Shown here one piece after another: positions 2,584 to 64,000 of a stretch of 64,000 nt of DNA. This DNA is from Epithemia pelagica (Eukaryota > Protista > Bacillariophyta). The notes under the pieces were generated by a model that ran no database searches, had not been told where the DNA came from, and saw only the letters and a list, made by a program, of their open reading frames with translations. How positions within the stretch are numbered: the stretch's first letter is position 1; every line of letters begins with the position of its first letter. The stretch lies in contig OX337239.1 of NCBI GenBank assembly GCA_946965045.2, positions 2,356,001 to 2,420,000 of the forward strand. The letters run 5' to 3'. The translations under genes were made by a program, and so were the position numbers.

Positions 2584-2807
2584 TGGACGACACAAAAAAG
2601 AGGCTTTACGAAGATTACTTTTAGTTTTAAACTGTGAAATCAGAACATGGTGTTTGGGCTCTTTTGGTAGTAGTGTTGCATGGGCGCTGTCGAGCGCAAT
2701 ATTTATTTCACGTGTCCAACCAATGATGGACACGATAGGCCTCTAGTTTTGGTGAATGTTATCGATCCAACGAATGAATGGAATGGCAGCACACTGGCGT
2801 ATTATTA

Positions 2808-15072: not shown

Positions 15073-15090
15073 TAGATGGAGACTTTACAC

Positions 15091-15724
15091 ACATTCACCA
15101 AAACTAGAGGCCTATCGTGTCCATCATTGGTTGGACCCGTGAAATAAATATTGCGTTCGACAGCGTCCATGCAACACTACTACCAAACGAGCCCAAACAC
15201 CATGTTCTGATTTCACCGTTTAAAACTAAACATAATCTTTGTAAAGCCTCTTTTTTGTGTCGTCCAGTAGTGGAATTCAGTTGGATGACTCCAGGCGTCT
15301 CCCTCCTGTTCAGAGTGTTCCAAAAGTGTCTTTTGGTTCCAGTCCAACCAACTTTTCTTGCTGGTGCTTCTACAGGGAATCGACCAACACTTGGACCAGA
15401 GGTTTCTGGTGGAAACAGAGAGGAGAATTTGGTTCGAATACCGCGCTCTGAAACTGCCGAATCGACCAACACCCAGATAGATTTGCGTGCGTGATGGAAC
15501 TTGCAAGTTGGTCCATCGCAAAACACCATCAACGTCCACAGCGGTTCGACGCATCGGGTAGTGGTCCTCGAGGTTTTTTCCCGAAGTGTGCGTGGATCAC
15601 AAGTTTCATGCTGCCGTTTCGGATCCAATCGGTGGCTCGTGGCTCGCTCGGATTCTCTCATGTTGGGAATGCCACAATGGTACGCGGTTCTGTTCCAGAA
15701 CGTTTGCAGTCTTTGGTGTCAAAG
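15091..15724 (-). pseudogene. Decayed inverted duplicate of the CPS 3' end (copy of 2117-2759, including intron and 3' UTR)
   Basis: The reverse complement aligns by eye with 2117-2759 with many substitutions and indels; donor GTAAG is changed to GCAAG and the frame is broken. Confidence 0.9.
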
Positions 15725-16205
15725 GATGATTTCTACTCGTAGTGTGTTGTTCCACGGATTCGACGACACTATTCGACCAACCATGTATATAGGCACGGAG
15801 ACGCACTTGCGAGACGCAGTTTCCCTGGACCAAGCCGCTGGCCCAGAAAGAAAGACGCACGGACGTTTGTGGTCCCGTGGTGTTCAGTGGCACACTGGTT
15901 CCAAACGCATTGCCGATTCTCTCTCTCTCGTCGTGTGGACACTGTTCCTGTATCGGGCGCGCACACATGGGAATCCTGTACCCATTGTCTTTTGGTTCCG
16001 TTTCATCCAAACGAGAGAGTCCAATACAACGTGTCATGTATGGATTCTCGTACTCTCCAGAACACACGCCACGGCAGAGGAATGGTACTCTCTTGGTTTT
16101 TTAAATGATTTGTGAACCAACTCCACCGTCCTTCCGTATGTGTGTGTGTACCTGTGTGTGTGTGGTGATCCATCTCTACATGGAAATGTGTCGGGTCCAT
16201 TCCAA

Positions 16206-18419
16206 TCATGTCTTTTGTCGTTTGGCACCCATTGCATTGTGGTGGTGGTTCCCACCACCCGAGGTTGTCCTGGCGTCGAGCGACATGGTCTCCTGGTGCG
16301 CATGTTTTTTGTGGGACGGGACACGGGTCGGGCATTCCGTGGTTCCGTGTTGGGTGGTGCCTCTGGCCCGTGCGGTCTCGTCCCGACTGCTACTACTAGT
16401 ACTACTACTCGTAGCACCATTGCTTGGACGCCGACCAGCGGCACACACGAGGAGGGCGGGCAGAGATCGGACCAACTGGTAGACGGTATCGAGTTGGGGC
16501 GAACACACGGCGGCCCATTGAAAATGGTACAGGCCCGTCACGGGATCGGCACATTCCAAGGCACGGGGATAGGCAGCAATCAACGGGGCAATACTGGCTT
16601 GCCAATCCAATCCCGACACCAAGGCATGGGTCAAGGGCAAGCGACCTGTTCGGGCATCGGCCATCAAGGCACTCCGAGGACTCCATTCCAACAAGAGTTG
16701 GACGACCGATTCTTGAACGCACGAATTGGTGGTGGAACTGGGCGGCGATGACTCGTCGTGGTCGTCATTGTCATGGTCAGTCTCTGGTTCTGGTGGGTGC
16801 CGCGCCGCAAACAAGCGTTCCAAAAAGGCGGCATCCCCGGACTGCAAGGCCACTTCATCTCGCTGCAATTGGGCTTCGTGTTGGTTGGGCAAGGCTCCAT
16901 CGGCCACGTGAATGGTTTCCCGAAAGCCATCTTCCAGTGGATTCCACCATGTCGGTTCGGCGTGTTCCTTTTGTTGACAGGCCAAGAGCAGGGGCGTAAA
17001 ACCCTGATCATTGCGTCGCAAGGCCATTTCCGGAAACATGCGACACAACCACCTCAGGACTTGTCGCGGACACGACGGTGTGGCTGCAGCGGCATGCACG
17101 ACCCAGTCAAATTGGTCTTTCCGAATCGGCAAGGGCATGCCTTGGTCGGTCCGAATCGTCCTCCAGTCGTAGTACCAGTCGTTGCCGCCGCCGGCTGTGG
17201 CACGATAGGAGGCTTGCAAAAAGAGGACCAGATTGTCCCAATCATCCCGATAATAATACGAATGCTCTTCGCCGCCGCCGCCGTCCTCGTCGTCCACCAA
17301 GACGTCGTCTTGCAATTCATTGGTTTCCAAAAAGGAACGAGGGAGTAACCAAAAGGGCGTGACACCCCGGTCATTGCCGTGACCCAGTACGGTCGGGGCC
17401 GCCTCCAACAAGGACCGTAACAGGTGAAAGGTGGCACCGGCCCGAGCGGCAAAATGCAAGGGTGCATCGCCATATTGATCGGCCAGGGCAGCCGCCTGCG
17501 GGACCGCCTGGACCAAATACCGTTGGACGGCTTCACTGCTGCCATAACTGGCCACATGCAAGGGCGTTTCCCCCTGAAAATTGCGTTGCACCACAATGGC
17601 CGGATTGGTCTGGACCATGGCCTGAACGACGGTCAAGGGCGGATACCGGACGCAACACGCATGCAAGGCATTCATACCGGCATTCTTGCCCTGCAGAGAG
17701 ACTTCGTCGGGATGCGAGGCAATGCGATCCAAGACGTCCTGCCATTCATCGTCCGTGGTTTGACTCGTGAGATACAAGAGCATGGAAGGCCATTTCCGAA
17801 TGAGATACGGGGGACGCGGACGACCCCAATAATCGACCGAGTCGTTGTTGTTATGAGTGGCATTGGGTGGACGATTACTGCTGCTGCTTTCCGTGAGGGG
17901 TCCCAGATGCAAGATGGAATCGGGTCCAAAATCTCCCTCTTGTCCCACGGCACAGCCAACCGGGTCCATGGATTGGACTTCCGACAAGACCAGTCCTCCC
18001 ACCAGCGGATTGTTATTGTTGTGGTTGTGATTGGCTTCAAATAGAGCGTGTGGTTTCGGTTGGTCGTCCGTGTGCTCGGGTTCCATGTCATTGTTGGAGG
18101 ATTCGGGGACGACCACAACACCCGGCGCGTCCGACACGGCCCATCTCTCGCAACAAGGGTCGGCAAATTGTTTCTCGGAGGAACACGCCAACGACGACAG
18201 TGCTATTGGTGTGGTGGTTGGTGTGGTTGGTGTGTTGTTGTTGGTGGTGGTGGCAGACATTTTGGAAGAATCGTCCAGCACCACCCTCGAATTCATGGGG
18301 ACCGACGCTCCTCCAAGAACTGGGCCTTTGGAGAATCGAACGTTGAATGACAGCAACGGAACCAGATGTTGGAGTGTGGGAGAGTGGGAAACAAAAAGAC
18401 CCAAGACGAACCATTCCAT
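16206..18419 (-). CDS. Ankyrin-repeat protein
   Basis: Ankyrin repeats (GMNALHACC, GETPLHVAS, YGDAPLHFAA, GVTPFW, GFTPLLLAC) and a diatom-type GRLPLTHAL...TGLYHFQWAA C-terminus; start at 18419 or 18296. Confidence 0.85.
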   Translation of the reverse strand: MEWFVLGLFVSHSPTLQHLVPLLSFNVRFSKGPVLGGASVPMNSRVVLDDSSKMSATTTNNNTPTTPTTTPIALSSLACSSEKQFADPCCERWAVSDAPGVVVVPESSNNDMEPEHTDDQPKPHALFEANHNHNNNNPLVGGLVLSEVQSMDPVGCAVGQEGDFGPDSILHLGPLTESSSSNRPPNATHNNNDSVDYWGRPRPPYLIRKWPSMLLYLTSQTTDDEWQDVLDRIASHPDEVSLQGKNAGMNALHACCVRYPPLTVVQAMVQTNPAIVVQRNFQGETPLHVASYGSSEAVQRYLVQAVPQAAALADQYGDAPLHFAARAGATFHLLRSLLEAAPTVLGHGNDRGVTPFWLLPRSFLETNELQDDVLVDDEDGGGGEEHSYYYRDDWDNLVLFLQASYRATAGGGNDWYYDWRTIRTDQGMPLPIRKDQFDWVVHAAAATPSCPRQVLRWLCRMFPEMALRRNDQGFTPLLLACQQKEHAEPTWWNPLEDGFRETIHVADGALPNQHEAQLQRDEVALQSGDAAFLERLFAARHPPEPETDHDNDDHDESSPPSSTTNSCVQESVVQLLLEWSPRSALMADARTGRLPLTHALVSGLDWQASIAPLIAAYPRALECADPVTGLYHFQWAAVCSPQLDTVYQLVRSLPALLVCAAGRRPSNGATSSSTSSSSRDETARARGTTQHGTTECPTRVPSHKKHAHQETMSLDARTTSGGGNHHHNAMGAKRQKT

Positions 18420-19419
18420 GTCACACCATGGTGTGAGCTTTTCGGTGCCAAGGCCGTCGCAACACTACCCAGCATCTACAAAGAAACTTTGGATCGAGTT
18501 TCTTATTCACTTTTCGCATTTGGGCCGATACGAGGAGTAAACCGAAATAGCTACCCTTGCTAGGCATAACTAAAAACTACCGAGCGTCCATGAGGTTAGT
18601 GGTAAAAAACAAAACATATAAAAGAAACACTTTGGAACGTCAGAGATTCAAAGCCGGCTCGCACGGAGGGAGTGGCGCACAAAGAGATACCATTCCCAGT
18701 GTTCATCCCCTCTGATATCTTGTTCTGGCAACAACTCCTGTTCTCTTCTCTTACGGACTGGCACATTCCTCTCTCTATCTGTGCGCAAAAGGGCCAGTGC
18801 TTGGTCTTTTTGGTGTGTGTGTGTACCGGTTTGGGACCCACAAACGCGAGATAGAAACACACACAACAAGCATGGTGGGTAAGGCGGATACCGGTGCCGC
18901 TGTAGATCGTGTCGTCGTCGTGGTCATCACAGCAGCAGCATCATCATCATCATCGACGAGTGCAAAGTGCTCCAACCGATTCACCCCGAACTAGTATCAC
19001 CACTAGCTAATAAGGAGTCTCATTGGCGACGTCCCACCATGATGGCCGAATCGCCGGTTCGGGCGGCCCACCACAACCATCCAAACGACCAACCACCTAA
19101 TACGACAACGACACTGTTTTCCAAGGCGACTCGTCATGAAAGTGAAGCCGAACAACGCATTTGACAAGCCTTGGATCGAGAACGCCAAAAACGTCAACAA
19201 CAACAACAACAGCAACAACCAGAACTGGACTTTTCCTTGGATCACGAGTTTCCTTCGAGTTTGCCCGATACCCTCGTACCAGATGGAAGCACGGTACCAA
19301 CCCCCAACCAAGCAGAGGAGGAGGAGGATGTGAATGCCGTTCCTTCCACGGCGATTCGATCCTCCTCCTCCTTGGCGACATCGACTCGCTATCTGACAGC
19401 CGTGCATGACTTGGAACAG

Positions 19420-19485
19420 GAAGAAGAAGAAGAAGAAGAAGAAGAAGAAGAAGAAGAAGAAGAAGAAGAAGAAGAAGAAGAAGAA
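19420..19485 (+). repeat. (GAA)22 microsatellite encoding poly-Glu
   Basis: Perfect trinucleotide run. Confidence 0.97.
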
Positions 19486-20190
19486 TTTAAACACGAACGA
19501 CGACGTCAAGATTTGGCAGCGGCCAGCTTGTTTCATTCCCAGCTGGCCAACGACAAAGACCACAACAACAGCAACAACAAAAACAAGGAACCCATGAGTC
19601 CCGCCTTGCAACGCATGACCCATGCCGCGGCCATTTTGTTGCACGCCAAGGGAGCCTTTGCCAAACCACTTCATTCCTCCTCCGACGACGACAACAACGA
19701 CATGGACCATTCCACTCGGATGGAAACCAACAACAACAAGAACCACCACCAACCGGACGACCCGGACAATACTCTTTCCGGGAAATCAACCACTCCCCCC
19801 GAACCAACCGAGCAACCCGTGCTGGAAGAAACCCTCCCGCACGATGAGCCGAGTAATTCTGTTCCTCACAGGAATGGGTCTGCCCAGCCCATGTCCCACC
19901 AGACTCCCACAGAGGGGCATGCTCCGCCCGGAAACGACGACGACCACTCGAACCAAGCAAAACGATTTCAGGCGCGCACGGCCATGAATGCCTTGGTACA
20001 AAAATTACATTCGGTCCACGACTTGTTGGGTCCCCAACAACCCTCCAAATTGTGGATGGATGTGCTCCAAGTCACAGTCGTGTTGCTGATTCCCTGTTTA
20101 CTTCTCGACGACTGCGACATTTTGCAGCCTACTATCTTTCCTATAGTTATTCTAGTACTCTTTTCTACAGCGCTCTACGGCCGATCCACC

Positions 20191-22953
20191 ATGGTCAACC
20201 TCCGCACTCCAAGGGCATCTCCGCGGACGTCTTCTTCGTCAACTGGTTCCCAAACCGCCCAAGCACGGGTGACTCAATTCTTTCAGCCGGCTGTGGCCGA
20301 TATGACTCCCGGTGCAATCTCTTCCACTCGCCAGAATGCAACACCCCGTGAGGCCGACTCCCTCGCGGACACGACGACGGCGGCGAGCAGTTTGGTGGCG
20401 TCGCTCACTTCCCGGTCCGCTCGGTCGTCCGGTCGAGGACGCGGCACAATGGCGACGAATCGTACCCCGGACCAAGTTCCTTTACCGGACACGTCGGATA
20501 CGGCTTCGGATTGGACCAGCGTCCAGTCGTCCTCGGGACGAGGCTCAGGTCGTAACCGAGCGCGAGGTGGCGGACGAGGTCGAGGACGAGGCCGTGAAAA
20601 CGGCCGACCTCCCTCTCATGATACTTCTGCTCGTGGCGGTCGAGCTGCCACTCCGGCGACGACGTCTCCTTCCCGTCGCCGTCGCAACCATCGACGGGCC
20701 CAGCAACGGAGGAGTGCTCGACTTTCTGCTCAAGCCGAGGCGGCGGACGACCCAGTGGAAGACGTTCCTATGGAGGATGTTTCCATCCCTCAGCCGGAGC
20801 CTACGACTGACACTGTCCCCGCTGTTGCAACTGTGCTTTCCCCGGAGGAGGCTACGGAGCCACCCTTGGCCGTGGCGGTCCCAGCGGATGTGCCTCCCGG
20901 AGCTCCTCAGCCGGCCCAGACTTCTGTTGAATCTCCACAACGGGGTTTCCAAACCACATTGAATTCTGAGCTCCAGGATTTAGCTCGTCAATCCACTGCA
21001 GTTTCGACGACCCCGACAGCGGAACCGACTCCAACAAACACTGCGACTCAACCTAGCACGGACACCACAAACTCGCGAATGTCCACGCGAGGGGGCTCTC
21101 CGATTCCCGACCAACCAACACCGGCTGCGGACGATCCTACAGTTGCGAGAGATAATGCCACTGGGCCAATGGTCCATATCTTTGTGAACCAACCGGTAGC
21201 TACTCCTTTGGCCACCTCTACTGGCAACAATGGTACCCCTACCTACGCGGCAGCCTTGCTACAACCAGCGGCCCGCTCGTCCTCCCGTCGTTCCAGGTCT
21301 TCCATGGCGAATCCCTACCTGCGCCCACTGCGCCTCAACCCTGCTCGACATGTGTCCGCTCGGTATGAAATCCGAGTCAATGTGCCCCCGTCCTCGCAGC
21401 CCGACGACGAGCTTCGCCGGTCCCTTGCATTGTACCTTACCAAGCTCCAAGAAGCGGACGCCTCGGTGGTTATTCACCCGTGGGCAGAGGTCGATAATCG
21501 TGACCGCCCTAATGGCGGTCGGCCTCTTCGAGCGATCTCGTCTCCCAATGGTATCCCGGCTGATATGGGCATATTGAAGAAATACTTCCCTCGCGCGGTG
21601 CCTAAAGCCAACGGTGGCTTCGTATACCCGTCGGTGTGGCTTGGACACACGAAACCTTTTTCGGAAATCGTATCGTCACTCTCTTGCTGGTTTCAAGCCG
21701 AACGGCATGGGTTATGGACAAGGCAGCTGCAATGCGAAACTACATCGATCGTAGGGTGGGCGCTCTATTCGACGCAGTCCATGCATGCCCCTACCTTGAG
21801 GATGCACCTTTCCGCCGAACTGGGTTTCGAAGTGGGCATACGGTGGCGAACAATCAGCACCGGTCAATCGGGCCCCATTCCCCCGAATCAAATGGCCAAG
21901 GCTCTCCACTTCGAAGTGGACCGGCAACACAAGTCGGAAGCCAAACGGCGCCTTGTGACGATTTATGACCGCAACGCCACGGACTTTCCGTTGGGGATTA
22001 AGCTCCGCTTGGTCTGGCCTCTCCACGACCTCATGAATATCAATACCCGGAACAAAGTCGCCGCGCTCCGACTTCGACAACTTCAATTTTGTCAGTCCAT
22101 GGTGAGCATGCGCACGTGGGAGCTTCATGACCTGGATGTGATCGACGATTCTTCGGGACTGTCCTTGAGAGACCGTCTGATGGAAATTAAAAGTCACGCG
22201 GGACATCGTTTGTTTCATTCTGTTGACCCAAGCCACTTGGAGGGCGCAGTTCAGTTTTGCTTCCATCCCGATCGCGAAGACGAAGCCCGCACCATGATTC
22301 TAGCGTTGGTGCCGTATCTCAGGTGGAAAGTTGCTACCGCCGAGCCCGACTTGGATGACCGCAATCGAGAAATCTTGCTTTCCCGGGTTGTTTATCGCCA
22401 TTTTAGCCAAGACGCTTTGGAACGAGCCGTGGGTGCGACGTGGAATCCCACCACTCTTACGGTGGATTCCCCAGCAGACACGTACAGCACTTGGGTCCAC
22501 GACACAGGGGATGCGGAGCTGGACTGCTCCCGGGTTGGCAACACGTCTTCCGCCACCGCCATCCAGTTAATCCCTCCACAAAGTCTTGTTCGTCCCCACG
22601 ACGCGGCTGCCGACGCAGATAGTATCTCAACACTGCCTCAAGGCACGTCCATCGCATCGACAGTAACAGGTGGCTCGGTGCTCTCACAAAACAGCTCGCG
22701 GGCCAGTGCCCCAACCCCAACTCCAGATATACAGCATCCATCGGCTACGTCGACCTCTGATGCAACTTCATCCATAGCCTCCTCGGCGTCTCCGGACCAG
22801 GTTCTTGCTCAACTCTCTCAAGTTCTTCAAAATGTCTCCCAGGTACTTCACGCCTATCCCAATCATCCTTCGACCGCTGCAGTGCGTAATCAACTCTCTT
22901 CCCTTTTGCCTTCCCCGACGGACGCGCCGACGCCGTCGGGGCCGCGCAATTAA
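20191..22953 (+). CDS. LINE ORF1 protein (920 aa)
   Basis: First ATG inside the element; R/G/S-rich disordered N-terminus followed by a globular region; precedes ORF2. Confidence 0.85.
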   Translation: MVNLRTPRASPRTSSSSTGSQTAQARVTQFFQPAVADMTPGAISSTRQNATPREADSLADTTTAASSLVASLTSRSARSSGRGRGTMATNRTPDQVPLPDTSDTASDWTSVQSSSGRGSGRNRARGGGRGRGRGRENGRPPSHDTSARGGRAATPATTSPSRRRRNHRRAQQRRSARLSAQAEAADDPVEDVPMEDVSIPQPEPTTDTVPAVATVLSPEEATEPPLAVAVPADVPPGAPQPAQTSVESPQRGFQTTLNSELQDLARQSTAVSTTPTAEPTPTNTATQPSTDTTNSRMSTRGGSPIPDQPTPAADDPTVARDNATGPMVHIFVNQPVATPLATSTGNNGTPTYAAALLQPAARSSSRRSRSSMANPYLRPLRLNPARHVSARYEIRVNVPPSSQPDDELRRSLALYLTKLQEADASVVIHPWAEVDNRDRPNGGRPLRAISSPNGIPADMGILKKYFPRAVPKANGGFVYPSVWLGHTKPFSEIVSSLSCWFQAERHGLWTRQLQCETTSIVGWALYSTQSMHAPTLRMHLSAELGFEVGIRWRTISTGQSGPIPPNQMAKALHFEVDRQHKSEAKRRLVTIYDRNATDFPLGIKLRLVWPLHDLMNINTRNKVAALRLRQLQFCQSMVSMRTWELHDLDVIDDSSGLSLRDRLMEIKSHAGHRLFHSVDPSHLEGAVQFCFHPDREDEARTMILALVPYLRWKVATAEPDLDDRNREILLSRVVYRHFSQDALERAVGATWNPTTLTVDSPADTYSTWVHDTGDAELDCSRVGNTSSATAIQLIPPQSLVRPHDAAADADSISTLPQGTSIASTVTGGSVLSQNSSRASAPTPTPDIQHPSATSTSDATSSIASSASPDQVLAQLSQVLQNVSQVLHAYPNHPSTAAVRNQLSSLLPSPTDAPTPSGPRN

Positions 22954-52014: not shown

Positions 52015-55000
52015 TTATCCACGAAATGGAACAAGGCGACGAATGTTAATTTGTTCAGTGACGTGGGGACCACGTTGGATAGTCACAGTGCCATTGGAAT
52101 GGACTTGTGTAATCCGAAAGGGATTGGGGCTTGTGCGGAGCTCAAGCTTGTCCGGATTCGTGGCGCGAAGGAGCACACGATCATTGACAGCGTAGTCATG
52201 AAAGACACGAGAACGATTTGCGAGACGAGCGCGTTCATCGACAATCTGTTGTCGTTTCAGACGGACTGTTTCCATGTCCGCAATAATAGGTATGTCGAAC
52301 AGCATGTCGCGATGGAACGCAAGGCTGCCGGGAGAATATTTCAAGGCGCCGTGAATGGCAGTGCGAGTGGAATACGCAGCGGTCTGCAGAGCAGTATCCA
52401 CGGCAAGTGCAGCATTGTGCGCATCTTGTGGTGGTTCATAGTTGGTGATCACACGAAGAGTGTTGCCAACAGTCAAATCTAATTGCTCGCAAAGAGCATT
52501 TGATTGAGGATTCTTGGCCGTCAACGGCACTGGCTTAATGCCATGGTTTCGAAGAACTTGCGTGAACGCATGTCCGATAAATTCACCGCCTTGATCAAAA
52601 AGGCAACGAACGGGACGTGGATAGCGTGAGAGCCACGCGTTTTCCAATTGAAGACCCACGTGACGTGCCGTCTTATCATGGATGCGAATGAGTTCGCAGA
52701 AGTTAGTGACATTATCGATAATAGTCAAGGCTTGAAATGTTAATTTCTGCCCATGAACGGTAATGTTCCACGGTCCAATGAGGTCGACAGAGATGTCAGC
52801 CCATGGATTGCCTCGGACCTCGCGAGGAGGGAGTTCACCGTAATGGCGATGTATGACTTTAGAGCGTTGGCATGTAGCACAACTAGCCACGGCTTGTTCA
52901 CAATACAAACCCAAATTAGGATGACTCATGTGCATAGAGATTGTCTCACGAAGACGTGTAGACCCCAAGTGATTGAGGGACAGGTGATACCAATTAACGG
53001 TATGGGCCAAGAGGCTGTCTGGGATACGAATGCGCCATGCGGCATTAGGATTCTGACGATAACAAATCAAGTTGTGTTGGGAATTTTCCGTAGGAATAGG
53101 TTGGAGATGGAATCTCTGTGGTTGTTCGGTCAACTTGGCCACAAGAGCGGCATCGTTCTGTTGGTGTTGATGGATCGTCGCGTAATTGACGGGCAATGGT
53201 TGATTTGCGTTGATGGGAGGATGATTGAGGTAGACATCGATCAAATCCTCATCCATGAAGATGGGAGATTTGAAAGCGTCGGGATCACGCGAGTGATGAG
53301 AGCGGGGGTCATCATTAGGGCCATGAGGCACTTGCAACACTGAGTGTTGTCCGCTATGATCATAGAGCGATCGTGGATGCGGCGAGGCATCCGTAGAGGA
53401 GGTCGACGACGGAGAGACACTCTTCTCCTCCTCTTCAGAGAGAGGGAGACGCGACAAGGCGTCGGCGATGACATTGTCCTGGCCAGGGACGTAGTGAAAG
53501 ATAGGGTGATACTCCTCGAGGAACAACCGCCAACGGAGGACCCGTTGCGAGTTGAGAGTAGCGTAGGTAAGATTTTTATGGTCCGTATGGACGTGCAGTT
53601 CGGCGCAGCCGAGAAGCATGGAGCGGAACTCCTTAAGGGTTTCGACAATGGAGAGTAACTCCTTTTCCATAGTAGTGTAGTTGCGTTGAGCAGGGTTTAA
53701 CTTGCGAGAGTAATAAGCGACGGGAACGTCTTGTTGCATGATTACAGCACCAAGCTGGTAATCAGAGGCGTCCACATAGACATGGAAGGGAAGGTTATGG
53801 TCGGGATACCGAAGGAAGGCATCATGTGCGAGCATGGACTTGGCTTGTTCAAAAGCACGTTGACATTGCGGGGACCAAACGAGGGTTTTGTTACCCGTAA
53901 TGGATGTGAGGGGAGCAAGAATATGAGATCGTTGTGGATACATGTGGCGATAGAAATTGATCATGCCAATGAAGGAACGAAGTTCTTTCATGGTTTTTGG
54001 CGGAGCCAATGCCAGGATGGCTGAGATCTTCTTTTTCCAGGGTTTGATCCCAGTGGGCGTAAGCCAATGGCCGAGCCATTCCGTTTCTTTTACGGCCCAT
54101 TCACATTTGGAAGGGTTGATGGAGAAGTTCTTGTCTTGAAGACGTTGGAGAACTTTGGACAGGATGCCCACATGTTCTTTCCAAGAATTGGAGAAGATGC
54201 CAATGTCGTCGATATAGACTTCGACATGGTCGCTGAAGTCCTTGAGGACTTCTTCCATGATCTCTTGACAGAAGTCAGGAGACTGTTTAACACCCATCGG
54301 CAAACGACGGTAACGAAATTTGCCAAAAGGCGTGGTAATGACGCAAAGATTGCTTGACTCTTCATCGAGCTTGAACGTATAGAAACACATAGAAATGTCA
54401 AGTTTCGTAAAATACTTGTAGCCTTTCCGTTTTCGGAGCATATCCTCGATACGAGGGAACGGATAGACCCGACGATAAAGTTGGGCGTTCAGAGAACGAA
54501 AGTCCGAAATCATTCGGATTCGACCATCCTTTTTGGGAATGGCGAAGTGAGGAGCAGCCCATTCGGTAGAACCGACACGCTCAAGGATGCCGATGTCGAC
54601 GAAGCGCCACAGCTCCTTCGTGAAGGTATCATGTATATTGCGGGGCACTGAAAAGTGACGATGATGGACAGGCTGGGCATCAGGCTTGAGATGAAGATAC
54701 AGCCTTCAGTCCGGATATGCACGGAGCTCGCCATCGAAGATTTTGCCACAGTCTTGCCAAATAGCAAGAAGATCTTGCTTTTGGGCATCGGTAAGATGAT
54801 TCTGTTTGTCAATCAACTCTTGTAGATCCGTAGGAACGTAGTTCGAATCCAAGAGGAATTGGTCACCAATAATGGGATCGTCGGCAAAGATGTCGATGAA
54901 ATGAGACATGAATGTCTGGTCTGTGGCGAATGAATCGCGGTGGCGCATAGCGACATCAACTGAGTCCCAAGTTGTGAGACCAGTGTTGAAATTGAGCACA

Positions 55001-57096
55001 ATGCCCAAGCGACGCAAGAGATCGCGGCCAATAATTATGTCATAACGACAATTGGGGGCATCAAAGATGTCGGCCCAAAGGGGGTATGAAATGTGTTTGG
55101 TCCGAGAAAACACGGGGAGAACCAAATCTTCGAGAAGAATCTCGGAGACGTGGTCGCGCGTACCCATGGTGGTATTGACAGACCGATTGGTTACACGTGG
55201 ATGCATGCCGGGCTGAAGACAGCGCGCGTGCAGGATCGTCTTGTCGGCGCCTGAATCGAGCAGGGCACGCAACGGGACGGTGTTCTCGACTCCACCAATG
55301 GACCGAGCCATCAAAATGGTAAGGGGAACAGACGGAGGCTCAGAGGGAGCGACCGAAAGGGGACTAGATAAACTAGGAGCGTCAGAGACAGAACTAGATG
55401 AGTAGACATCTTCATAGTGATCTAGGTTAGATAAAAAACCATTATTGGGATCAACGATGTCAGCGATGACAGCATCCGTAGGATTGGGACAGTTTTTAAC
55501 ACAAGGGGAAGCGACAGTATTCGTCGTTGCCTCCAGGGGAGGACAGGTCGTAGATGTGGGCGATATCCATGTTACGCCCGTAGATCTTGAACAATTGTTC
55601 ACGGACTTCGAGAATTGGGGCCTGAGGATGGCATTCTCGGCCGGCATAGCCTGTGGAGGGCCAGTCTGGATGTGACATTGCTGAGCAAAAAGAACATCAA
55701 GGTGATGAGAAATATCCGGAGAGGATGAGGTAAAAAAGGAAGAAGAGCACATACCGGGGACCGTTCGATCGGCATTGCGGAGACTCGACCAATCACGAGT
55801 ATCAGCGAGAGGACGTTGACGAGCACGATAAGCCGCGTCTTGCACAGAAGGCAACGGCTCGGCCAACGACGGATCAACCGGTGGATTGTCGCATGTGTTG
55901 GTGCCTTCAGAGGCATGCTGGTCTGAGCCAGATCCAGAACGACGGGGAACAGCGCCCCAACTGGAACCAATAGGGCGCGATCCTCCAGATGAGGGAGTTC
56001 CCTGGCTACGAGAGCCTTGGCCGTTACGGCCTTGGTTCTGAGAACCATTGTTGGGGTGAGACCCAGTAGGGGTACGAAGACCAGACCCGGTACGGGCAAG
56101 AAAGGCGTTGAAACGCTCTTGGTTAAAATTGGAGGACTGCGGGTTGTAGATGCAGTTGGCCCAAGTATGATTGGCGTGCGAAGGAATCGCGTCCTTGTAC
56201 GGACAGGCATCGCCGTCATTGACGGGACGATCACCGGACGCTTGGCGTCCACCATTAGACTGGCGATTGCCGCCGCGGAGACCGCCACGGCCACCATTAG
56301 AGGAGCGAAAACGCTTCGTAGAACCACGAGAAGTGGAATCATCGCGAGGATTGCGGGACTTGGCCTGGGACTGTGCGTTGGCAGCCATCTTCTCTTGGGA
56401 GGCCCGTTGATAGCCACGCATCGCATGAAGGAGGTCGGTGACATTGAAATGGTTCACCAAATCTGCAACCAAGGGATTGGCCGTCTTGAACTCGTTGCGC
56501 CAAGCAACAGGGGAGCCGAGATAGAAGGCTTGCTTCAACTCATCGTCAGTGAGGGTTTGGACAGCGTTGTCGTTAGACAAGTAACGGAGACCGTTGGAAA
56601 TCTTCTGGAGGGTGTGATAATGGATATCCACGGTCATATCAGGTGGCTTGCGAGGACCGCTAAGAAGGTGTGCCTGAAAGGCATTGACTTCGGAAACCGT
56701 CAACTTGGGTTCGAAGATCGTAGCAATCAACCGTTTGAAACACGCCTCATCAAGGTCGGCGCCATCAGGCAAGGCCTGGAATGCATCATGAAACTTGTCC
56801 GCTACGAGACTTGTGGTTACACGGGGAAAGTAGGTGCAACAGGCAGCAAAGGGCTCTGGATGACCGGAGATCTTGACCTTGTCAACAAAATGGAGGACCC
56901 ACAGGAAGAGATTCGAGGGCTCTTCGTCCACGCCATCGCGGAATGGCAAGAGACGGACGTAGTACTTGTCATCGTCGTCGTCTTTCATCTTGAGGGTGGA
57001 AAGAGCAGAGGAAGAATCTGACGATGAGGCTTGATCAAAGCGCTTTTGGAAGCGTTGAACATCCGCAAGGGACACGAGGGAAGATCCTGTGCTCAT
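52015..57096 (-). pseudogene. Gypsy Gag-PR-RT-RH-IN frame with one in-frame TGA (54706-54708) between PR and RT
   Basis: ALLDSGAD (PR); LDISMCFY, YIDDI (RT); VDASD, EKELLSI, TDHKNL (RH); HHCC, SVDLIGP, DQGGEF (IN). The two ORFs share one frame. Confidence 0.9.
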
Positions 57097-57224
57097 GATG
57101 AGACTGCAAAAGAAAGGAAAGGAAAGGAATCAAAGGATGATGAGATCAACGAGGATCGGCCAAAGAACGGCAGGTGGTTATGGTGAAAGAGTGTTGGGGG
57201 AAGTTTTCGAGCTTCTGATCAGAG

Positions 57225-57440
57225 TGCCTTACCCATGTAAAATAGCACGGTATAAAAATTGTGATCTTTAGGAATTACGAGGAATTAGGGGGAATGAGGA
57301 ATCCACAGTGCCACGTGCGACGAGAAATGACTGGAGGAGGAACAGCCAGATGGCGGAAGAGTCATGTCGCAGTGTCAAGAACGCGAACCGGGAATGGAAC
57401 GTGGCGACACGTATGGCGGGATCCATATAGGGGTACCGCA
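57225..57440 (-). repeat. Gypsy 5' LTR
   Basis: Matches the split copy; imperfect terminal IR TGCCTTACC/GGTACCGCA. Confidence 0.95.
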
Positions 57441-57641
57441 GATGCATGGTACACACTCAATGTGAGGCGTGGCCGGCGTTCAGATTGCATTAGCGATCGA
57501 TCGATGACACACCTGGCGCTGTGTGAAAAAAACACCAGCGTATTGTACAAAATTTTCTACAAGAGTAGAGTTGGGGGGCGCGATGGGGGTGAAAGCGCGG
57601 CGGTCTTTGGTTTTGGTTGCCTGTCACAGACAGTGTCACAA

Positions 57642-59006
57642 CCCTCGGTATCAGTGTCCACTGCTTAGCTGTTTTTTGTCTGTGCCACCTTCACAGGTTC
57701 CCAAGTGGACACAGCCAGCATTTTATGTTTTTCGTCTGTCTGTCTACCCAATAAAATTCCTCAGGGTTGGAGCAAGGCCAGCGTGCATGTGACAGTTGAC
57801 GGTTGGTGGTTGTCCTCTGGTCACCACGATTCAAATTTTTTGGGCAACCCTCCCGTCCTCGTCTGTCACAAAACACCAAAAACCGAGCCAAATGCTTGAC
57901 CATGACGTGAGGTGAGAACAATGGATGCAACATGCTGGGCTGAACCTGAACTGCTTCTCACTTCTCACTTCTCACTACTGTGGCTTATTTCTAATCTTCT
58001 TGTTTCTTTTTCTTTCTTCTCACTCATCACTGCTGCAATCTTTCCTCTTGTTCATGCATGATCCTTTGGCTTGTCTCTTGTTGAACAAGTAGACTAGGAA
58101 CAAGCCGCTTGATGTCAACTGGAGTATCTTACCCGTCTCATTTGTTGATGTAGGAGTAATTGTTTTGTTGTTTGATTGTTGGTTGGTTGCTTTCATGTCT
58201 TCTGTAGGATAGATGATTCACTATCGTCATAGGTTGTAGCATCATCTCATTTCTCAATGACCGAACACTTTGTTCTTTTTGCTTCAAATAGATGGGAAGC
58301 CCTCTTGCTCTTGCCACACCCTACTTCCCATGTCTATCAGTTCATAGAGTCATAAGTTGTAGCTGTAGCGTGTGAGAGCTGCTTGTGTTCATGGTGAAAC
58401 TGAGAGTGATTGCCATGCTCAAAACAGAAAAGAGATCTGCAACGAATTCAGAATGCACTGAACTCTACGAATGAATAGCACTTGAGTTCTATTTCTACTC
58501 CTAGTATATAAAGAAAACAATGTCTGCAGTCTGTTTATGAATCGAATGAAAGTTATCAAAAATCCGTCATTTCGACATGTAGAATGGCACGTAATGAGCT
58601 ACCCAGAGACACAACAGATGATCGCCTCTCTTCCCATGAGCAGAGCAAACAAAAGTGACAAGTGTCAGTGATCAGTGAGCATGAGCTATGTATTTGTCAT
58701 GGCAATTGGCAGCGGATCACACTCACCTGGAATGCCATTCGTACGGTGTGCTTCGGCAACAAGAGAAAAGAATTGTGTGCTTGTCATTATGAATTATGGA
58801 GCAACCAGCAGTTATCCACGCACGGCCGCTTGCTGGGCATGCGTCTGTTTCAAACTGTGAAAACTCCAGCTGGGTATGCGTGCCAATTTGCCATTTGATC
58901 ATTTCTATTTGTCTCAAAAGCAAAAAATGATGTCTGTGTCCACCTGGGAACCTAAAATGATGGCACAGACAAAAAACAGCTAAGCAGTGGACACTGATAC
59001 CGAGGG
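57642..59006. mobile_element. Non-autonomous TIR DNA element (1365 bp, about 90-bp TIRs, CpG-depleted interior)
   Basis: The first 46 bp (CCCTCGGTATCAGTGTCCACTGC...) are perfectly inverted at 59006, then imperfect to about 90 bp; no TSD seen. Confidence 0.85.
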
Positions 59007-59267
59007 ATTCTATTGTGTCAACAAAAAGTAGAAGCAACCTGACTAATTTGGCAGCCTGACTAAATTTGGTGGGCGGAATTCTGGGGTCACCGCGATGCCA
59101 CCGTAGAAAACTTTGACAATTTATAACTTAACTTCTACTTAACCAATTTTGGAATTTGAGGTGTCATTCAAAAGCCCAGAACGAGATCTGTCGATTGGGC
59201 ACTTCAAAATGTGTTTTTGGCTGAAGGAAAGTTTAAATTGGTAGTCTAACTTAGCTACCTGCCCACA

Positions 59268-59306
59268 CACAGTCTCGATCAGATTTGGTGCAGTCTAGCA
59301 AGAAAC
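59268..59306 (+). other. Candidate RSS-like left terminus of the RAG1-like transposon
   Basis: CACAGTC + 23-nt spacer + GCAAGAAAC (heptamer 6/7, nonamer 6/9 versus the RSS consensus), pointing toward the transposase ORF. The partner end lies outside the window. Confidence 0.3.
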
Positions 59307-60240
59307 GACAATGACAAAGTCAGCATCCATCAAGGTAGCATGAATGCATAGTGTGTACCCAACAACTTCATTGTTGTCAACATGCTACCTTCAGCTCCAA
59401 CAGTATCATTATCATCACACAGACCTGATGATACACGCAGGAACCACTGTTGACATTCTCGCTGTGTCTTGTCCAGAAGGACTGGCATCTCGACTCCAAG
59501 GGAACCAGCAGTATGAACAAGAAGAACTTGATCCTGTCTATTGAGAAAGCCATGAAGGACATGAAAGACAATGAATAGGGGAGAAATCCGATTAATTAGT
59601 GTTATAGTGAGAAGTTACGTGTCAATTCACGTGATAGCCCGTATAACGTAAGGAGCACTTCGTATCCCAAGTCGCACGCATGCACCACTTTCATGCCGTC
59701 GCGACCATCTAAGAATCCCAAAAACTCACTATAAGCCAAATAGTGGAAAGAGTTTTTGGTTAAATAATACGGTCGTTTGGCATCAAATTTCACTCTTGAG
59801 CATCTCTTCTCCATTGGAAGCCCAAAACGGAGTCCATATCATGTATGTAACTCTGATGTAAGTATGCAAAAACTTTCTTCTATGTATCCAAATTGGATCC
59901 CCGACCTTGCATCAGAGTTACAATATTGTCTTTCATGCCCGTAAGTCCAACTGAAAGTGCCTCCAAATTATGAGAAAAAAAACCATGTCACGCTCGGCTT
60001 CCGTCCGAGATGGCATACTCACAATAATAATAATTCTACGTCTACGAATATAGTATTACGCAGTAGTCGCATGTTAATCGACAATTCCAAACTCTCCCTT
60101 CGACTCGATGAGATTGGGCCTCTCTCATCTTTTACAAGACGTCTCTTGATTTCGTAATGACCCGATTGACACATCCATCCAATCAATCGTCTCTCTCTGT
60201 ATCATAACCGGCCTCACGGTTTGATTGCGTTGACAGAGCC

Positions 60241-63200
60241 ATGATAACTCGATCTCAAACCACGACGAAACCAGGGAAAGAAGCAGCAACCACTCCAAAA
60301 GAACCCGACACCCCTCCACCTTCTCTTCGCCGCTCCTCCCGAATTGCTAAAGACCCTCCACCTCCCAAGGAACCTCCAGTCCCTTGCAAGGAACCTCCAC
60401 CCCCTCCCGAAGATCCTCCAGCACCTCCCAAAGAGCGTCTTGTCCCTCCCAAGGAACCTCCCGCCCCTTCACACCCTCTTCGGCGATCGTCCAGAATTGC
60501 TGAAGACTTACCGCCATCTCCCAATCTTCAAACTAGAGCCACCCGTCTGAACAAAGGCACGACGATATCCAACAGTTATGTCGAAAGGGAAAGGATTGCC
60601 AAGATTCGTAAGCAATTCAAGCACCACTACAAGAAGCCGTGTTCCGTTTTCGGTCTCGAACGAGAGGCCCGATATCGTGGTGGTTTTTTCTTCTGTCTAA
60701 ATTGCGAATATGCGGATAACAAGGAACGTGCCCAACCTCAACTCAAGGTCAATAGGTTCTCTGGTCTTTTCGGATGTGTTGCCGAGCACAAGAATGGTAT
60801 TTACCCAACAGACCGAATGATTGATGAGAAAAAAAGGAGACTCAAGAAACTTGCCGAACAACAGCGACAGAAAAAAGCCAAAGCCGACAAGGACGCCCAA
60901 CAAGAGATTGGTTCTCTTACAAATCCTGATTTATTGGAAGCAGAATCAAAACAATCAACACACGATCTCTCCGCCGAACCTTCTCCAACGAATCAAGGCC
61001 CAGAATGTCACTCACTTCAAGACAACGAATATGATGAATCCAGCAAACCCCCTTCACAACAGTCCATTTCGTTGACAGTCCCCAATGAACCAAATCTCAC
61101 ATTGGCTCAACCTGAAGAGGCGAATGTCCCCCCTCCTTCCATGAAGCATCCTCCCAATCCTTATGAAGACCAAGAATTTGTCAGTAGTCAGAAGAAACCC
61201 CCTCCTACCGGAACCAGTGATGCTCCCTCCAGCCAGACACTCATTCCACCACCAGATGACGACGGGGTTGAGTCAGACCGAATACCTGAAGACGATGGCT
61301 TCGAAGACACAATAGATAAGACTGTAATTCCCCGTAGTAGAAACGACCCTCCTGTGGATATCAATCGCGGTCTAACGATTCCACAGATCCTTGATCGATC
61401 TGACGCACCCCCGGAAACAACCACACCTTCAAACGAAGAACAAGAAGAAGAGAAGAAACAGTACACTGTTTCTCTGGTTAATGGACTGTTGTTGCAAGTC
61501 GAGTCCCTTAAAAAGAAGCTATCCAAAGAAGGACAAAGAAATGCAACTCTGAAGCGGCGTCTTTCCGAACAGCGGGCGAAAAACAAGTCGAGACTTGATC
61601 GTATATACTATCTCCAGAAAAAGACAGAACAATCTGGCCCAGATGGGATGGCTTCTCTTCCCTCTACCTGTTCCAAGGAAGAAAATGCTGAAATGATTAT
61701 CCGACACATCAAGGAAGTCATTCAATCTTCCGTGAAGAACCATCAAGTTGGTAGCCAAAGGTCCGACAAGTTTTTCAGAATGCTAACCAATATGCTTATG
61801 AATGACAACTTGCATGGAACGCAAGTTCGTGACATAATGGTTAAGGCTGTTTCCAACTATCTCAGGCAAACTTGTTTCTCACCTTTCCGTATTCTTCGGG
61901 AAATGGATACGACCGGTGGTGTTTTGAGTTTGTCAGGTCTTGAGATTTTGCGGAAGTGCGAGTCCGACGGGAGGAAGGGAGCCCATACAATGATCCCGAG
62001 TTCCGCGGCCATGAAGAAAGCCCAACAAGAAATAGAACGCTTTGCTGACACAATAGTTCCCTTCCATACCATTCGCAATACGAAAGACGGTTCGGAAGGA
62101 TTCATTTTCCGGGGGGCCGACACTATGAAAGGTGTTCTGAGATCCAATAATGCGTTGGAAGGTGAGGCGAAAGAAAGGGAACATACAGTGGCCTCGTGTA
62201 TGGATGGAGCCAGTCTTACTAGATCATTGGACCATACACTGGGTGGGGTCAAGTACAATGATATCTCCAACCCACTTCAACGGTCCCAGGCAGCTTGTGT
62301 CCCAACCTGTTGTGTCATTGGTCGGGAAAAGAAAAACACTGTACGCGGATTATTCTCTAGAATGTTGAAAGAAAACAAGGAAGCAGCCGAGACTGTACTC
62401 CCGAAAGCGTTCGGAATAAAAGAAGTGTACAATCCACTCAATGCCGATATGTCCTGTGATTTCAAAGTTTCAGACAAAGGAGGAGCGGTTAAAGTTGCGA
62501 AATATCCATGTGCCAAGTGTCACATTTCAAGTGATAACTTAACAAAGGGCCTGGAATCACCCGATGACTGCAAATGGTGTGATCACATGGACTACGCATC
62601 TACAGAAGATGGATGGATGTGTCGTCACTTTCCTATTTGCACCGACGACTATGTGCAAATCCGCAAGGACGAAATGAAAAAGTTCGAGAAGGACATGCCC
62701 CAGATCAAGGACCAGATTGAAGAAATATGGGCTAAGTCGAAAATTGCAATGAACAAGACAATGGACCCTAGAATGCCGGTCGATGAGATTCAGTTGAAAA
62801 CAGTCTCTTCAATTCACTTCGATGTGGCTCAGGCGTCAAACACTTTACAGAAGAGGTACTCTTCTTGGCTGAACCAGGATCTGGGTTTACGTAATTTGTC
62901 CGTAGATGGCAATGTGTTGGAACGACAGGATCGTTTACGACGCCAACTGATTTCGGAGTGGCAATATGTTGATTGCCATGATTGCGTCCGATTGTTCGGG
63001 GAAGGTACGGTCAGCACTGCACTTGTTATGGTCATGGATTCCATTCCCTGCATTCTCCACATGGAGATGCGAATGGGGCAGAAGATTTTGACTATGTGCT
63101 TCCGGACCGGGCTTATGAATGCCAAAAACAATCTACTTCCTTGGATTCAACGATCCAACCGTTCGTCTGTCGAGAAAAAATGCAAGTCCTTCCTTCGAGG

Positions 63201-64000
63201 AATCGAGCATTGCATCAATACCGAAATACTTGGAACAGGAAATCTCGCGTTCCAGTTTCAGATTCCATTCGAGGAAACCACGAAGACTATTGGGGTGGTT
63301 CAGATGAGCAATGTACAGATCCGACGTTTGATTGTCGACATCGAGAAACTCGTGGACAAGTGCATCGTGGATGAGGATGACATCTTCTTATGGAAGAGGG
63401 CAATGGAACACTACTCTGCCTCGTTCCAACTGCTGCGAATTCGGGAACCCATGACAAACGAGCAAATATTTGACTACCAGAAGCATGCTGATCTCTTCTA
63501 TCGCGACTGGATAGAGTTGTATGGTGACGATGGGATCACAAATTATGCCCACTACATTGGTAGTGGGCATATCGGGGAATATCTCCTACACTGGCGCAAC
63601 CTCACGAACCATTCCCAGCAAGGCTGGGAAGCGTTCAACTCCGCTTTTAAGAGCTTCTATTTCAATAGAACTCAGCGCGGAGGAGCAGTGAATAGAGGAA
63701 AAGGGGCACGCTCAAGGCTACGTCCCATGGCAAGATGGATCCAACGCCGCATGGTTTTCATGCTAGGTTACGACCTGGAAACCATGCGAGCCGAAATGGA
63801 TGCGAGGACTCCGGAAGAAGAAGAGAAGTTCAAAACGTGGGTGAGAGACAATGGCGGAACAATCAAATTCGGGCAGCTTGTTCGACACAACAAAAAAGCC
63901 AATGACGAATCCAAGGATGACGAAGATGAAGATGAGGAAGGACACAACAATACAGGCAATGACGAATCCAAGGATGACGAAGATGAAGATGAGGAAGGGG
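60241..64000 (+). CDS. RAG1/Transib/Chapaev-like DDE transposase (at least 1253 aa, 3'-partial; not in the ORF track)
   Basis: Manual translation shows no stop from ATG 60241 to the window end. CMDGA (D655), NADMS (D736), CAKC (C757/C760), IPCILH (H940), GITNYAHYIGSGH (H1104/H1110), SQQGWEAFNSAFK (E1130). Confidence 0.78.
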   Translation, partial: MITRSQTTTKPGKEAATTPKEPDTPPPSLRRSSRIAKDPPPPKEPPVPCKEPPPPPEDPPAPPKERLVPPKEPPAPSHPLRRSSRIAEDLPPSPNLQTRATRLNKGTTISNSYVERERIAKIRKQFKHHYKKPCSVFGLEREARYRGGFFFCLNCEYADNKERAQPQLKVNRFSGLFGCVAEHKNGIYPTDRMIDEKKRRLKKLAEQQRQKKAKADKDAQQEIGSLTNPDLLEAESKQSTHDLSAEPSPTNQGPECHSLQDNEYDESSKPPSQQSISLTVPNEPNLTLAQPEEANVPPPSMKHPPNPYEDQEFVSSQKKPPPTGTSDAPSSQTLIPPPDDDGVESDRIPEDDGFEDTIDKTVIPRSRNDPPVDINRGLTIPQILDRSDAPPETTTPSNEEQEEEKKQYTVSLVNGLLLQVESLKKKLSKEGQRNATLKRRLSEQRAKNKSRLDRIYYLQKKTEQSGPDGMASLPSTCSKEENAEMIIRHIKEVIQSSVKNHQVGSQRSDKFFRMLTNMLMNDNLHGTQVRDIMVKAVSNYLRQTCFSPFRILREMDTTGGVLSLSGLEILRKCESDGRKGAHTMIPSSAAMKKAQQEIERFADTIVPFHTIRNTKDGSEGFIFRGADTMKGVLRSNNALEGEAKEREHTVASCMDGASLTRSLDHTLGGVKYNDISNPLQRSQAACVPTCCVIGREKKNTVRGLFSRMLKENKEAAETVLPKAFGIKEVYNPLNADMSCDFKVSDKGGAVKVAKYPCAKCHISSDNLTKGLESPDDCKWCDHMDYASTEDGWMCRHFPICTDDYVQIRKDEMKKFEKDMPQIKDQIEEIWAKSKIAMNKTMDPRMPVDEIQLKTVSSIHFDVAQASNTLQKRYSSWLNQDLGLRNLSVDGNVLERQDRLRRQLISEWQYVDCHDCVRLFGEGTVSTALVMVMDSIPCILHMEMRMGQKILTMCFRTGLMNAKNNLLPWIQRSNRSSVEKKCKSFLRGIEHCINTEILGTGNLAFQFQIPFEETTKTIGVVQMSNVQIRRLIVDIEKLVDKCIVDEDDIFLWKRAMEHYSASFQLLRIREPMTNEQIFDYQKHADLFYRDWIELYGDDGITNYAHYIGSGHIGEYLLHWRNLTNHSQQGWEAFNSAFKSFYFNRTQRGGAVNRGKGARSRLRPMARWIQRRMVFMLGYDLETMRAEMDARTPEEEEKFKTWVRDNGGTIKFGQLVRHNKKANDESKDDEDEDEEGHNNTGNDESKDDEDEDEEG
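63900..63998 (+). repeat. 57-bp-period tandem repeat encoding NDESKDDEDEDEEG
   Basis: 42-bp identical units at 63900-63941 and 63957-63998; may continue beyond the window. Confidence 0.93.

Follow-up and report, generated by a model that had tools for sequence, protein, structure and literature searches.

A two-gene transposon with a RAG1-fold transposase in the diatom Epithemia pelagica, a probable undescribed branch of the CMCT clade

RAG1 is the textbook example of a transposase that became domesticated. The relatives known so far (Transib, TransibSU, Chapaev and ProtoRAG) have mostly been described from animals. A long open reading frame (ORF) in the diatom Epithemia pelagica raises the question of whether an enzyme of this kind occurs in stramenopiles and to which transposon lineage it belongs. 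The frame lies at the end of a stretch of 64,000 nucleotides (assembly GCA_946965045.2, contig OX337239.1, positions 2,356,001 to 2,420,000 of the forward strand), which is called the window here. Our analysis showed that the frame, ORF1, is part of an element of 6526 bp that extends from window position 59647 to the equivalent of about 66172. We consider it probable that this element is an autonomous and probably mobile cut-and-paste transposon with two genes, whose RAG1-fold transposase represents an undescribed branch of the CMCT clade. This clade comprises EnSpm/CACTA, Mirage, Chapaev, Transib and Plavaka, and also ESTA and Lanisha (Kojima 2025, PMC12730594).

Translation of frame 1 of the forward strand showed 1253 codons without a stop, from the ATG at 60241 through the window end at 64000, as the initial annotation had noted. 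The window's own locus in the source assembly (L004; ENA ERZ21939226, contig ctg1328l) is 100% identical over 9819 bp to window 54182–64000. At this locus the stop codon of ORF1 was found 131 bases past the window end, which gives a full protein of 1296 aa, and the right end of the element was also located beyond the window, where the annotation had expected both. The motifs that it listed were found at the codons it gave; PCILH itself occupies 63046–63060, and 63058 is the codon of H940. These motifs are not due to chance, because their residues were invariant or at least 90% kept in alignments of 50 homologues. In the Cys/His insertion, C757, C760, C777, C780 and C794 were invariant and H796 was kept in at least 90% of the sequences. 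N1101 and Y1102 were invariant alongside H1104 and H1110, and E942 and W1129 were kept in at least 90%. C757-x2-C760, the first CxxC, stands 21 residues after D736 and is the counterpart of the C(2)C motif described for the CMCT clade (PMC12730594). The Pfam scan of the N-terminal 519 aa gave no match, and only a simple C..CxxC..CxxxH cluster was conserved there, which is presumed to be a DNA-binding zinc finger. The acidic tail (63884–64000) was the most variable part of ORF1 between 90% identical copies.

The core of ORF1 (aa 520–1200) was modelled with AlphaFold2 on the 50-sequence alignment, with a mean predicted local distance difference test (pLDDT) of 88.3 and a predicted template modelling score (pTM) of 0.78. 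In a Foldseek search of the PDB with this model, all 49 significant matches were RAG1, HzTransib or BbRAGL. The best E values were 1e-10, 1e-7 and 5e-6, respectively, and the next protein was Hermes (0.07). VIA-align gave Z scores of 20.3 for mouse RAG1 (residues about 460–1008), 20.1 for HzTransib (21–478) and 18.7 for BbRAG1L, against 11.5 for the P element, 8.9 for ISCth4 and 7 for Hermes. The match spans about 420–460 aligned residues, which is the entire RAG1 core downstream of the nonamer-binding domain (NBD), from the dimerisation/DNA-binding domain through RNase H, ZnC2 and ZnH2 to the C-terminal domain. In the secondary structure of the model, D655 lies on strand 1, D736 after strand 4 and E1130 on a later helix, the canonical RNase H-like order. 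The predicted structure supports ORF1 as an intact Asp-Asp-Glu (DDE) transposase with a RAG1/Transib-type core fold, as initially proposed. The RNase H fold foreseen for D655, D736 and E1130 appeared in the model, with the triad placed by secondary-structure elements, and the best hits were transposases.

Sequence searches gave no such relatives. Pfam held no match for ORF1, for the 50 homologues at E ≤ 1, or for 10 diverse cores at E ≤ 10; RAG1_RNase_H, RAG1_pre-RNase_H, RAG1_ZnC2, RAG1_ZnH2 and RAG1 were among the Pfam families without a match to any of these sequences. PF02992 (Transposase_21), PF18759 (Plavaka) and PF06918 matched no family member. Searches of PDB sequences with ORF1 alone, with the full-length profile and with the core profile found no RAG1 or Transib chain and no relative. 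The Pfam and PDB sequence matches that did appear for ORF1 and its family were coiled-coil or low-complexity noise and were rejected.

The PDB ranking cannot tell RAG1 kinship from kinship with the CMC superfamilies (EnSpm/CACTA, Mirage and Chapaev), because the PDB contains no CACTA, Mirage or Chapaev structure. Among the predicted structures of the ESM Atlas, the template modelling (TM) score normalised by the query was 0.58 for RAG1, 0.58 for plant CACTA (Transposase_21), 0.54 for arthropod Transposase_21, 0.58 for a fungal cluster labelled DUF1280, 0.59 for an unnamed fungal cluster and 0.63 for an unnamed rotifer cluster. The Transposase_21 matches (TM 0.54–0.58) extended over 444–479 residues. 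In the AlphaFold DB clusters, uncharacterised proteins scored ahead of RAG1 against the core model. The motif order and spacing of the RAG1 type are common to the entire CMCT clade (PMC12730594) and so identify the clade, not RAG1; RAG1 likeness at the level of HHpred has been reported for ESTA too (PMC12730594). Protein-language-model features scored 0.91–0.93 for RAG1/Transib-type clusters (164–187 shared features), 0.85 for Transposase_21 clusters (123–128) and 0.82 for Plavaka. This ranking leans weakly toward RAG1/Transib kinship and serves as a lead, not as a test.

The start of the element was first revealed by a 90% identical copy (L001), where similarity begins. Both ends were fixed to the base because three pairs of young copies, 99.2–99.5% identical, sit at unrelated loci of the same assembly (Table 1). 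The left terminal inverted repeat (TIR), CGTAAGGAGCACTTCGTATCCCA, has its sole match in the window here, compared with 0 expected. For the right end of L001, a 14-nt inverted match (16421) and a CACATA match (15717) were rejected, since the young pairs put this end at 15890. The terminal consensus across sister subfamilies is 5′-CA(C/T)WWCGAGCA, which is CMCT-like and literally CACTW in some subfamilies. L002 and L008 have CA..TG termini, the left ends of L001, L003 and L009 begin with CA, L005 and L012 have CAC..GTG, and the window's copy carries CG..CG, a CpG variant. The termini of L005 and L012 read 5′-CACTT/CACTA...TAGTG-3′; CACTW termini were seen in sister subfamilies only. The window TIR has no CACAGTG or CACAATG heptamer and no A-rich nonamer at 12/23 spacing. 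A signal resembling a 23-type recombination signal sequence (RSS) at 59263–59306 was dropped because it lies 340 bp outside the element. CACTA-style subterminal repeat arrays were sought in the element and none was found. Its 5′ non-coding part holds a 17-nt inverted repeat (59846–59862 and 59906–59922).

The flanks of the copies point to a very short target site duplication (TSD). The base left of the element equalled the base right of it in 8 of 8 independent insertions (a/a, c/c, a/a, a/a, c/c, c/c, t/t and g/g), with a chance probability of about 1.5e-5. No direct repeats of 3 or 5 bp were present at these insertions. A 2-bp reading was possible at two of the eight, both homodinucleotides that a 1-bp TSD explains equally well. 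We rejected TSDs of 2, 3 and 5 bp, as well as a CG palindrome as target. The CA..TG and CG..CG dinucleotides belong to the TIR and not to the target, because copies that are 99% identical keep them without change wherever they sit. The simplest reading is an apparent TSD of 1 bp, which, if it holds, is outside the 2–5 bp range reported for CMCT lineages.

The copy count suggested with the initial annotation gave at least nine copies in one assembly, which sit at unrelated loci and all have the same TIRs at their ends. The subfamily of the window had 7 members at 90% protein identity, three with full-length ORFs (1282, 1296 and 1297 aa) and the others truncated. The ratio of non-synonymous to synonymous substitution rates (dN/dS) between 90% identical copies was 0.10 for ORF1 and 0.18 for ORF2, and within young pairs it was 0.4–0.6 for ORF1 and 0–0.4 for ORF2. 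Low values between 90% copies and higher ones in young pairs are the pattern usually left when active lineages are under selection and their copies decay neutrally once inserted. Since both ORFs are intact and the TIRs near-perfect, the window's copy is a plausible autonomous element. The family looks recently mobile, and the earlier suggestion of possible activity is strengthened by the 99.2–99.5% identical copies, the intact TIRs and the purifying selection, all of which make activity probable.

One of the copies was itself interrupted. In L002, the transposon contains a 5387-bp long terminal repeat (LTR) element (15485–20871) with two 100% identical 757-bp LTRs, a 5-bp TSD (GTTCC) and TG..TA ends. 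This LTR element has an internal ORF of 1129 aa and two smaller ORFs without a Pfam match, which is unusual for an LTR retrotransposon. Its insertion looks very recent.

The second gene, ORF2, encodes 548 aa on the opposite strand (L004 10001–11647). A gap of 50 bp separates it from the stop of ORF1, and it lies about 182 bases past the end of the window. A convergent ORF2 was present in L001, L002, L003, L004, L005, L008 and L009, with gaps of 32–58 bp to the ORF1 stop, and was 43–63% identical where the transposases were 52–78% identical. In the metagenomic locus L012, the transposase shares a 90% identity cluster with a transposase of a Bacillariaceae genome; a convergent ORF of 460 aa follows it after a gap of 6 bp and is homologous to ORF2 by hhalign (96.5%, E 8e-10). 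A locus of Seminavis robusta (L010) has a convergent ORF of 562 aa after a gap of 102 bp, with a weak profile match to ORF2. A distant metagenomic family member (P0143, 1136 aa; L011 1293–4703) had no convergent ORF downstream, and its N-terminus gave a weak GNAT acetyltransferase match (E 0.01).

The predicted structure of ORF2 (pLDDT 77) showed three parts. The N-terminus is a BAH domain: all of the top 18 fold matches in the PDB and AlphaFold DB were BAH domains (Z 8–9.7), including ORC1b, PBRM1, EBS, BAHCC1, DNMT1/MET1 and DIM2. The middle domain (aa 175–375) is strongly conserved and gave no structural match. The C-terminus is a small barrel with weak Tudor/KOW/SH3-like matches (Z 4–6). 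A convergent partner of Kelch/RAG2 type had been anticipated; the convergent gene is present and encodes a BAH-domain protein, with no Kelch match in Pfam and no propeller match in the ESM Atlas (whole-model TM about 0.2). ORF2 is most likely an accessory factor that would link the transposase to chromatin or to the element ends, as its predicted domains suggest. A parallel with the plant homeodomain (PHD) finger of RAG2 would be functional at most. In the copy L007, ORF2 (13945–15591) is broken into three pieces (115, 281 and 144 aa), while the 1297-aa transposase is intact. As a naturally ORF2-defective copy, L007 could reveal whether the element requires ORF2 in cis.

The family is large: among 1.84 billion cluster representatives, a profile search found 4927 proteins at E ≤ 1e-3, of which 812 reached E ≤ 1e-30. 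The named members were from Seminavis robusta and a Bacillariaceae genome, and the rest were unannotated, from metagenomes and assemblies. The family is widespread in diatoms. By its sequences and predicted fold, it is likely a previously unnamed deep lineage of the CMCT clade with a RAG1-fold transposase. The initial annotation had suggested an undescribed family; the lack of Pfam matches agrees with this.

In the mechanism that we propose, the core of ORF1 would form an RNase H-like catalytic domain (D655, D736 and E1130) interrupted by Cys/His modules that presumably bind zinc. On the model of RAG and Transib, the enzyme would introduce a nick at each end, free the element and connect its 3′-OH ends to the target, and the strand-transfer joints at the target would be only 1 bp apart. 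We also speculate, as a doubtful proposal, that the diatoms hold a deep sister lineage of Transib/RAG in which a RAG1-fold enzyme and a chromatin-reading partner (BAH plus Tudor-like barrel) are encoded tail-to-tail as RAG1 and RAG2 are, with strand transfer staggered by 1 bp. If true, the “nuclease plus histone reader” logic of V(D)J recombination would have been invented here independently, or this lineage would be a trace of an older ancestor with two components.

The family could instead belong to the Transib/RAG1 branch itself, either as the sister of the animal Transib, TransibSU and RAG1L transposases or as an early offshoot of them, and the direct ancestry of the V(D)J recombinase would then extend to stramenopiles. 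This placement is possible, though we judge it rather unlikely. The PDB matches to RAG1, Transib and BbRAGL over the whole core speak for it, as do the language-model scores, which are higher than those of CACTA and Plavaka, and the spacing of 20 residues from His to Glu, which equals that of RAG1. The differences in TSD and termini would not be fatal to it, since both are reported to vary inside Transib, including 3-bp and TA TSDs (bioRxiv 10.64898/2026.08.26.747230); TSD length is thus a supportive feature and not a decisive one. However, the PDB lacks the CACTA, Mirage and Chapaev structures that could compete, and the TM score of RAG1 (0.58) is no better than those of the Transposase_21, DUF1280, rotifer and fungal clusters. 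None of the 50 members matched a Pfam RAG1 family, profiles reached no RAG1 or Transib chain in the PDB, and the element lacks a heptamer- or nonamer-like TIR, a 5-bp TSD, a Chapa or RING N-terminus and a RAG2-like partner. The RAG1-related lineage of the initial annotation is upheld for the core fold and not for a special closeness to RAG1, given that the spacing is clade-wide, CACTA fits equally well and no RAG1 profile matches. It is improbable that the element is an ordinary member of a named CMC superfamily (EnSpm/CACTA, Mirage or Chapaev) in which only the host is new. The CACTT/CACTA...TAGTG termini of L005 and L012, the short TSD, the Transposase_21 fold match (TM 0.58) and the existence of two-gene CACTA elements would fit such a member. 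PF02992, PF18759 and PF06918, however, match no protein of the family, the TSD is neither 3 nor 2 bp, and subterminal repeat arrays are missing. ORF2 is convergent and contains a BAH domain, unlike TnpA, and the language-model similarity to CACTA clusters (0.85, about 125 features) is at chance level.

A domesticated host locus, in which a transposase-derived gene is kept with a chromatin partner, has hardly any probability. Purifying selection on both ORFs and the ORF2 domains, which are typical of host chromatin proteins, would be expected of such a locus. The copy pattern (at least nine copies at unrelated loci with the same TIRs, 99% identical pairs, and truncated or interrupted copies) is that of a transposing family and not of a single conserved host gene, so domestication is largely refuted. 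Several points weigh against the reading we prefer, a mobile two-gene transposon from an undescribed CMCT branch. The family was set apart from Transib, Chapaev, Mirage and CACTA by profiles, fold and published descriptions, and its His pair has the spacing H(5)H where the CMCT clade has H(3-4)H. The DDE triad was placed by secondary-structure elements. The 1-bp TSD was read from flanks only, a search of all gathered sequences for an empty site found none, and the metagenomic copy L012 has no matching single flanking base. The public runs in which the sequence occurs resemble DNA assemblies and were uninformative about expression and excision.

Table 1. Features of the element in the window, with its copies and their ends. 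Positions are those of the window unless a locus is given.
Feature	Position	Strand	Evidence or remark
Left TIR, 23 bp, CGTAAGGAGCACTTCGTATCCCA	59647..59669	+	Similarity to L007 (99.2%) and L001 (90%) begins exactly here
5′ non-coding part of element, presumably promoter and leader	59670..60240	+	73–90% conserved among L001, L002 and L004
ORF1, transposase	60241..64000	+	1253 codons in window, 1296 aa in full
N-terminal Cys/His cluster C134, C151, C154, C179, H183	60640..60795	+	Kept as C..C-x2-C..C-x3-H in full-length alignment
Catalytic core, aa 520–1200, predicted RAG1/Transib-type architecture	61798..63840	+	AlphaFold2 model, Foldseek and VIA-align
Catalytic D655, in CMDG	62203..62205	+	Invariant in 50 sequences; model strand E130–139, first of RNase H-like sheet
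Catalytic D736, in ADM	62446..62448	+	Kept in at least 90% of sequences; directly after fourth strand (E214–216 of model)
Cys/His insertion after D736: C757-x2-C760, C777-x2-C780, C794, H796	62509..62628	+	CAKC at 62509–62520
PCILH motif (P936, C937, H940), then E942, R944	63046..63060	+	P936, C937, H940 and R944 invariant
H1104-x5-H1110 within GITNYAHYIGSGH	63550..63570	+	Both His invariant; H1104 at 63550, H1110 at 63568
Catalytic E1130, in QQGWEAFN	63628..63630	+	Kept in at least 90%; 20 residues after H1110; model helix H608–624
Acidic C-terminal tail, 57-bp tandem repeat units (NDESKDDEDEDEEG)	63884..64000	+	Self-matches offset by 57 bp
Right TIR, read inward CGTAAGGAGCACTTTGGATCCCA	L004 9657–9679 (beyond window)		21/23 positions match left TIR
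Copies L004 / L007			99.2% identity; element 6526 / 6529 bp
Copies L002 / L008			99.2% identity; element 11,681 bp (nested insert) / 6280 bp
Copies L003 / L009			99.5% identity; element 6179 bp
Copy L001			90% identity to L004; element 6482 bp
L005, single copy			48% protein identity (transposase core) to the window's ORF; element 6317 bp
Ends of L001, L002, L008			CATAGGCAGCAC
Ends of L003, L009			CATTACGAGCAG
Ends of L005			CACTTCGAGCC / CACTACGAGCAC
Ends of L012			CACTTCGAGCATC / CACAACGAGCATC

Other repeats were found around the element. A 10-nt inverted repeat (ATAGCCCGTA) flanks the insertion at window 59636–59645 and L004 9626–9635; its arms are 1 bp away from the left end of the element and 21 bp away from the right end, on the outer side in both cases. 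This match may be due to chance, or the element may have inserted into another sequence that is palindromic or bears TIRs. A very high-copy repeat lies just upstream at window 58782–59169; its summed contig depth in three DNA-like public runs was 9,000–38,000, compared with about 200–600 for the transposon and 2,000–3,500 for the neighbouring flank. Window 52918–57440 is about 90–96% identical to L002 6–4304 on another contig, beside an integrase (rve) gene fragment. It is a second repeated element common to the window and L002 loci and is unrelated to the transposon.

The diatom family is a large RAG1-fold family in diatom genomes and metagenomes that Pfam does not detect, with about 4900 clusters at 50% identity. 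It widens the known host range of the RAG1 fold and offers an outgroup for reconstructing the evolution of the RAG1 core. The conserved pairing with a BAH protein provides another, independent case in which to study why chromatin readers are recruited by RAG-fold transposases. An element that is intact and young, and whose 23-bp ends are defined, can be tested directly and could become a transposition tool for diatoms.

The features described for the CMCT clade are CA..TG termini, TSDs of 2–5 bp, and C(2)C and H(3-4)H motifs (PMC12730594). The diatom family resembles this clade in its DDE triad on a predicted RNase H-like fold, its C(2)C after the second Asp, its CA..TG termini and its short TSD. 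It differs in the apparent TSD length of 1 bp, in the second gene with a BAH domain, which is absent from the cited descriptions of CMCT lineages, and in having no sequence-profile link to any named lineage. Compared with Transib, RAG1 and RAG1L (HzTransib 6PQX, mouse RAG1 6DBO/4WWX and BbRAG1L 6B40), the core matches as a whole, with the DDE residues on equivalent secondary-structure elements, a CxxC after the second Asp and a His pair that precedes the Glu by 20 residues. This architecture is probably common to CMC transposases too. The identity is only 12–14%, and the diatom family has H(5)H and an extra CxxC..CxH cluster. Its termini are 5′-CG/CA TAAGGAGCAC, without the CACAGTG heptamer or the nonamer, and its TSD is apparently 1 bp, not 5 bp. 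In RAG1 and Chapaev, a Chapa zinc-finger domain and a RING finger lie upstream of the core (PMC4411706), whereas the Pfam scan and alignment of the N-terminal 519 aa of ORF1 showed no NBD, Chapa or RING region.

CACTA/EnSpm elements fit the predicted structure equally well, and they share the two genes and, with the sister subfamilies, the CACTW termini. The diatom element differs from them in having no PF02992 match, no 3-bp TSD and no subterminal repeat arrays, and its second gene is convergent, does not arise by alternative splicing and is unrelated to TnpA as far as tested. The 2-bp TSD of Mirage does not fit. ProtoRAG, the RAG1L-RAG2L transposon of amphioxus, has different TIRs and TSDs, and its second protein differs from ORF2, a BAH protein without a six-bladed Kelch propeller or PHD finger. 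Both elements have two convergent genes between TIRs, a RAG1-fold transposase and a domain of the chromatin-reader type in the second protein. Three traits are distinctive of the diatom lineage: the convergent BAH-domain gene, the H(5)H pair with the extra Cys/His cluster, and the apparent 1-bp TSD.

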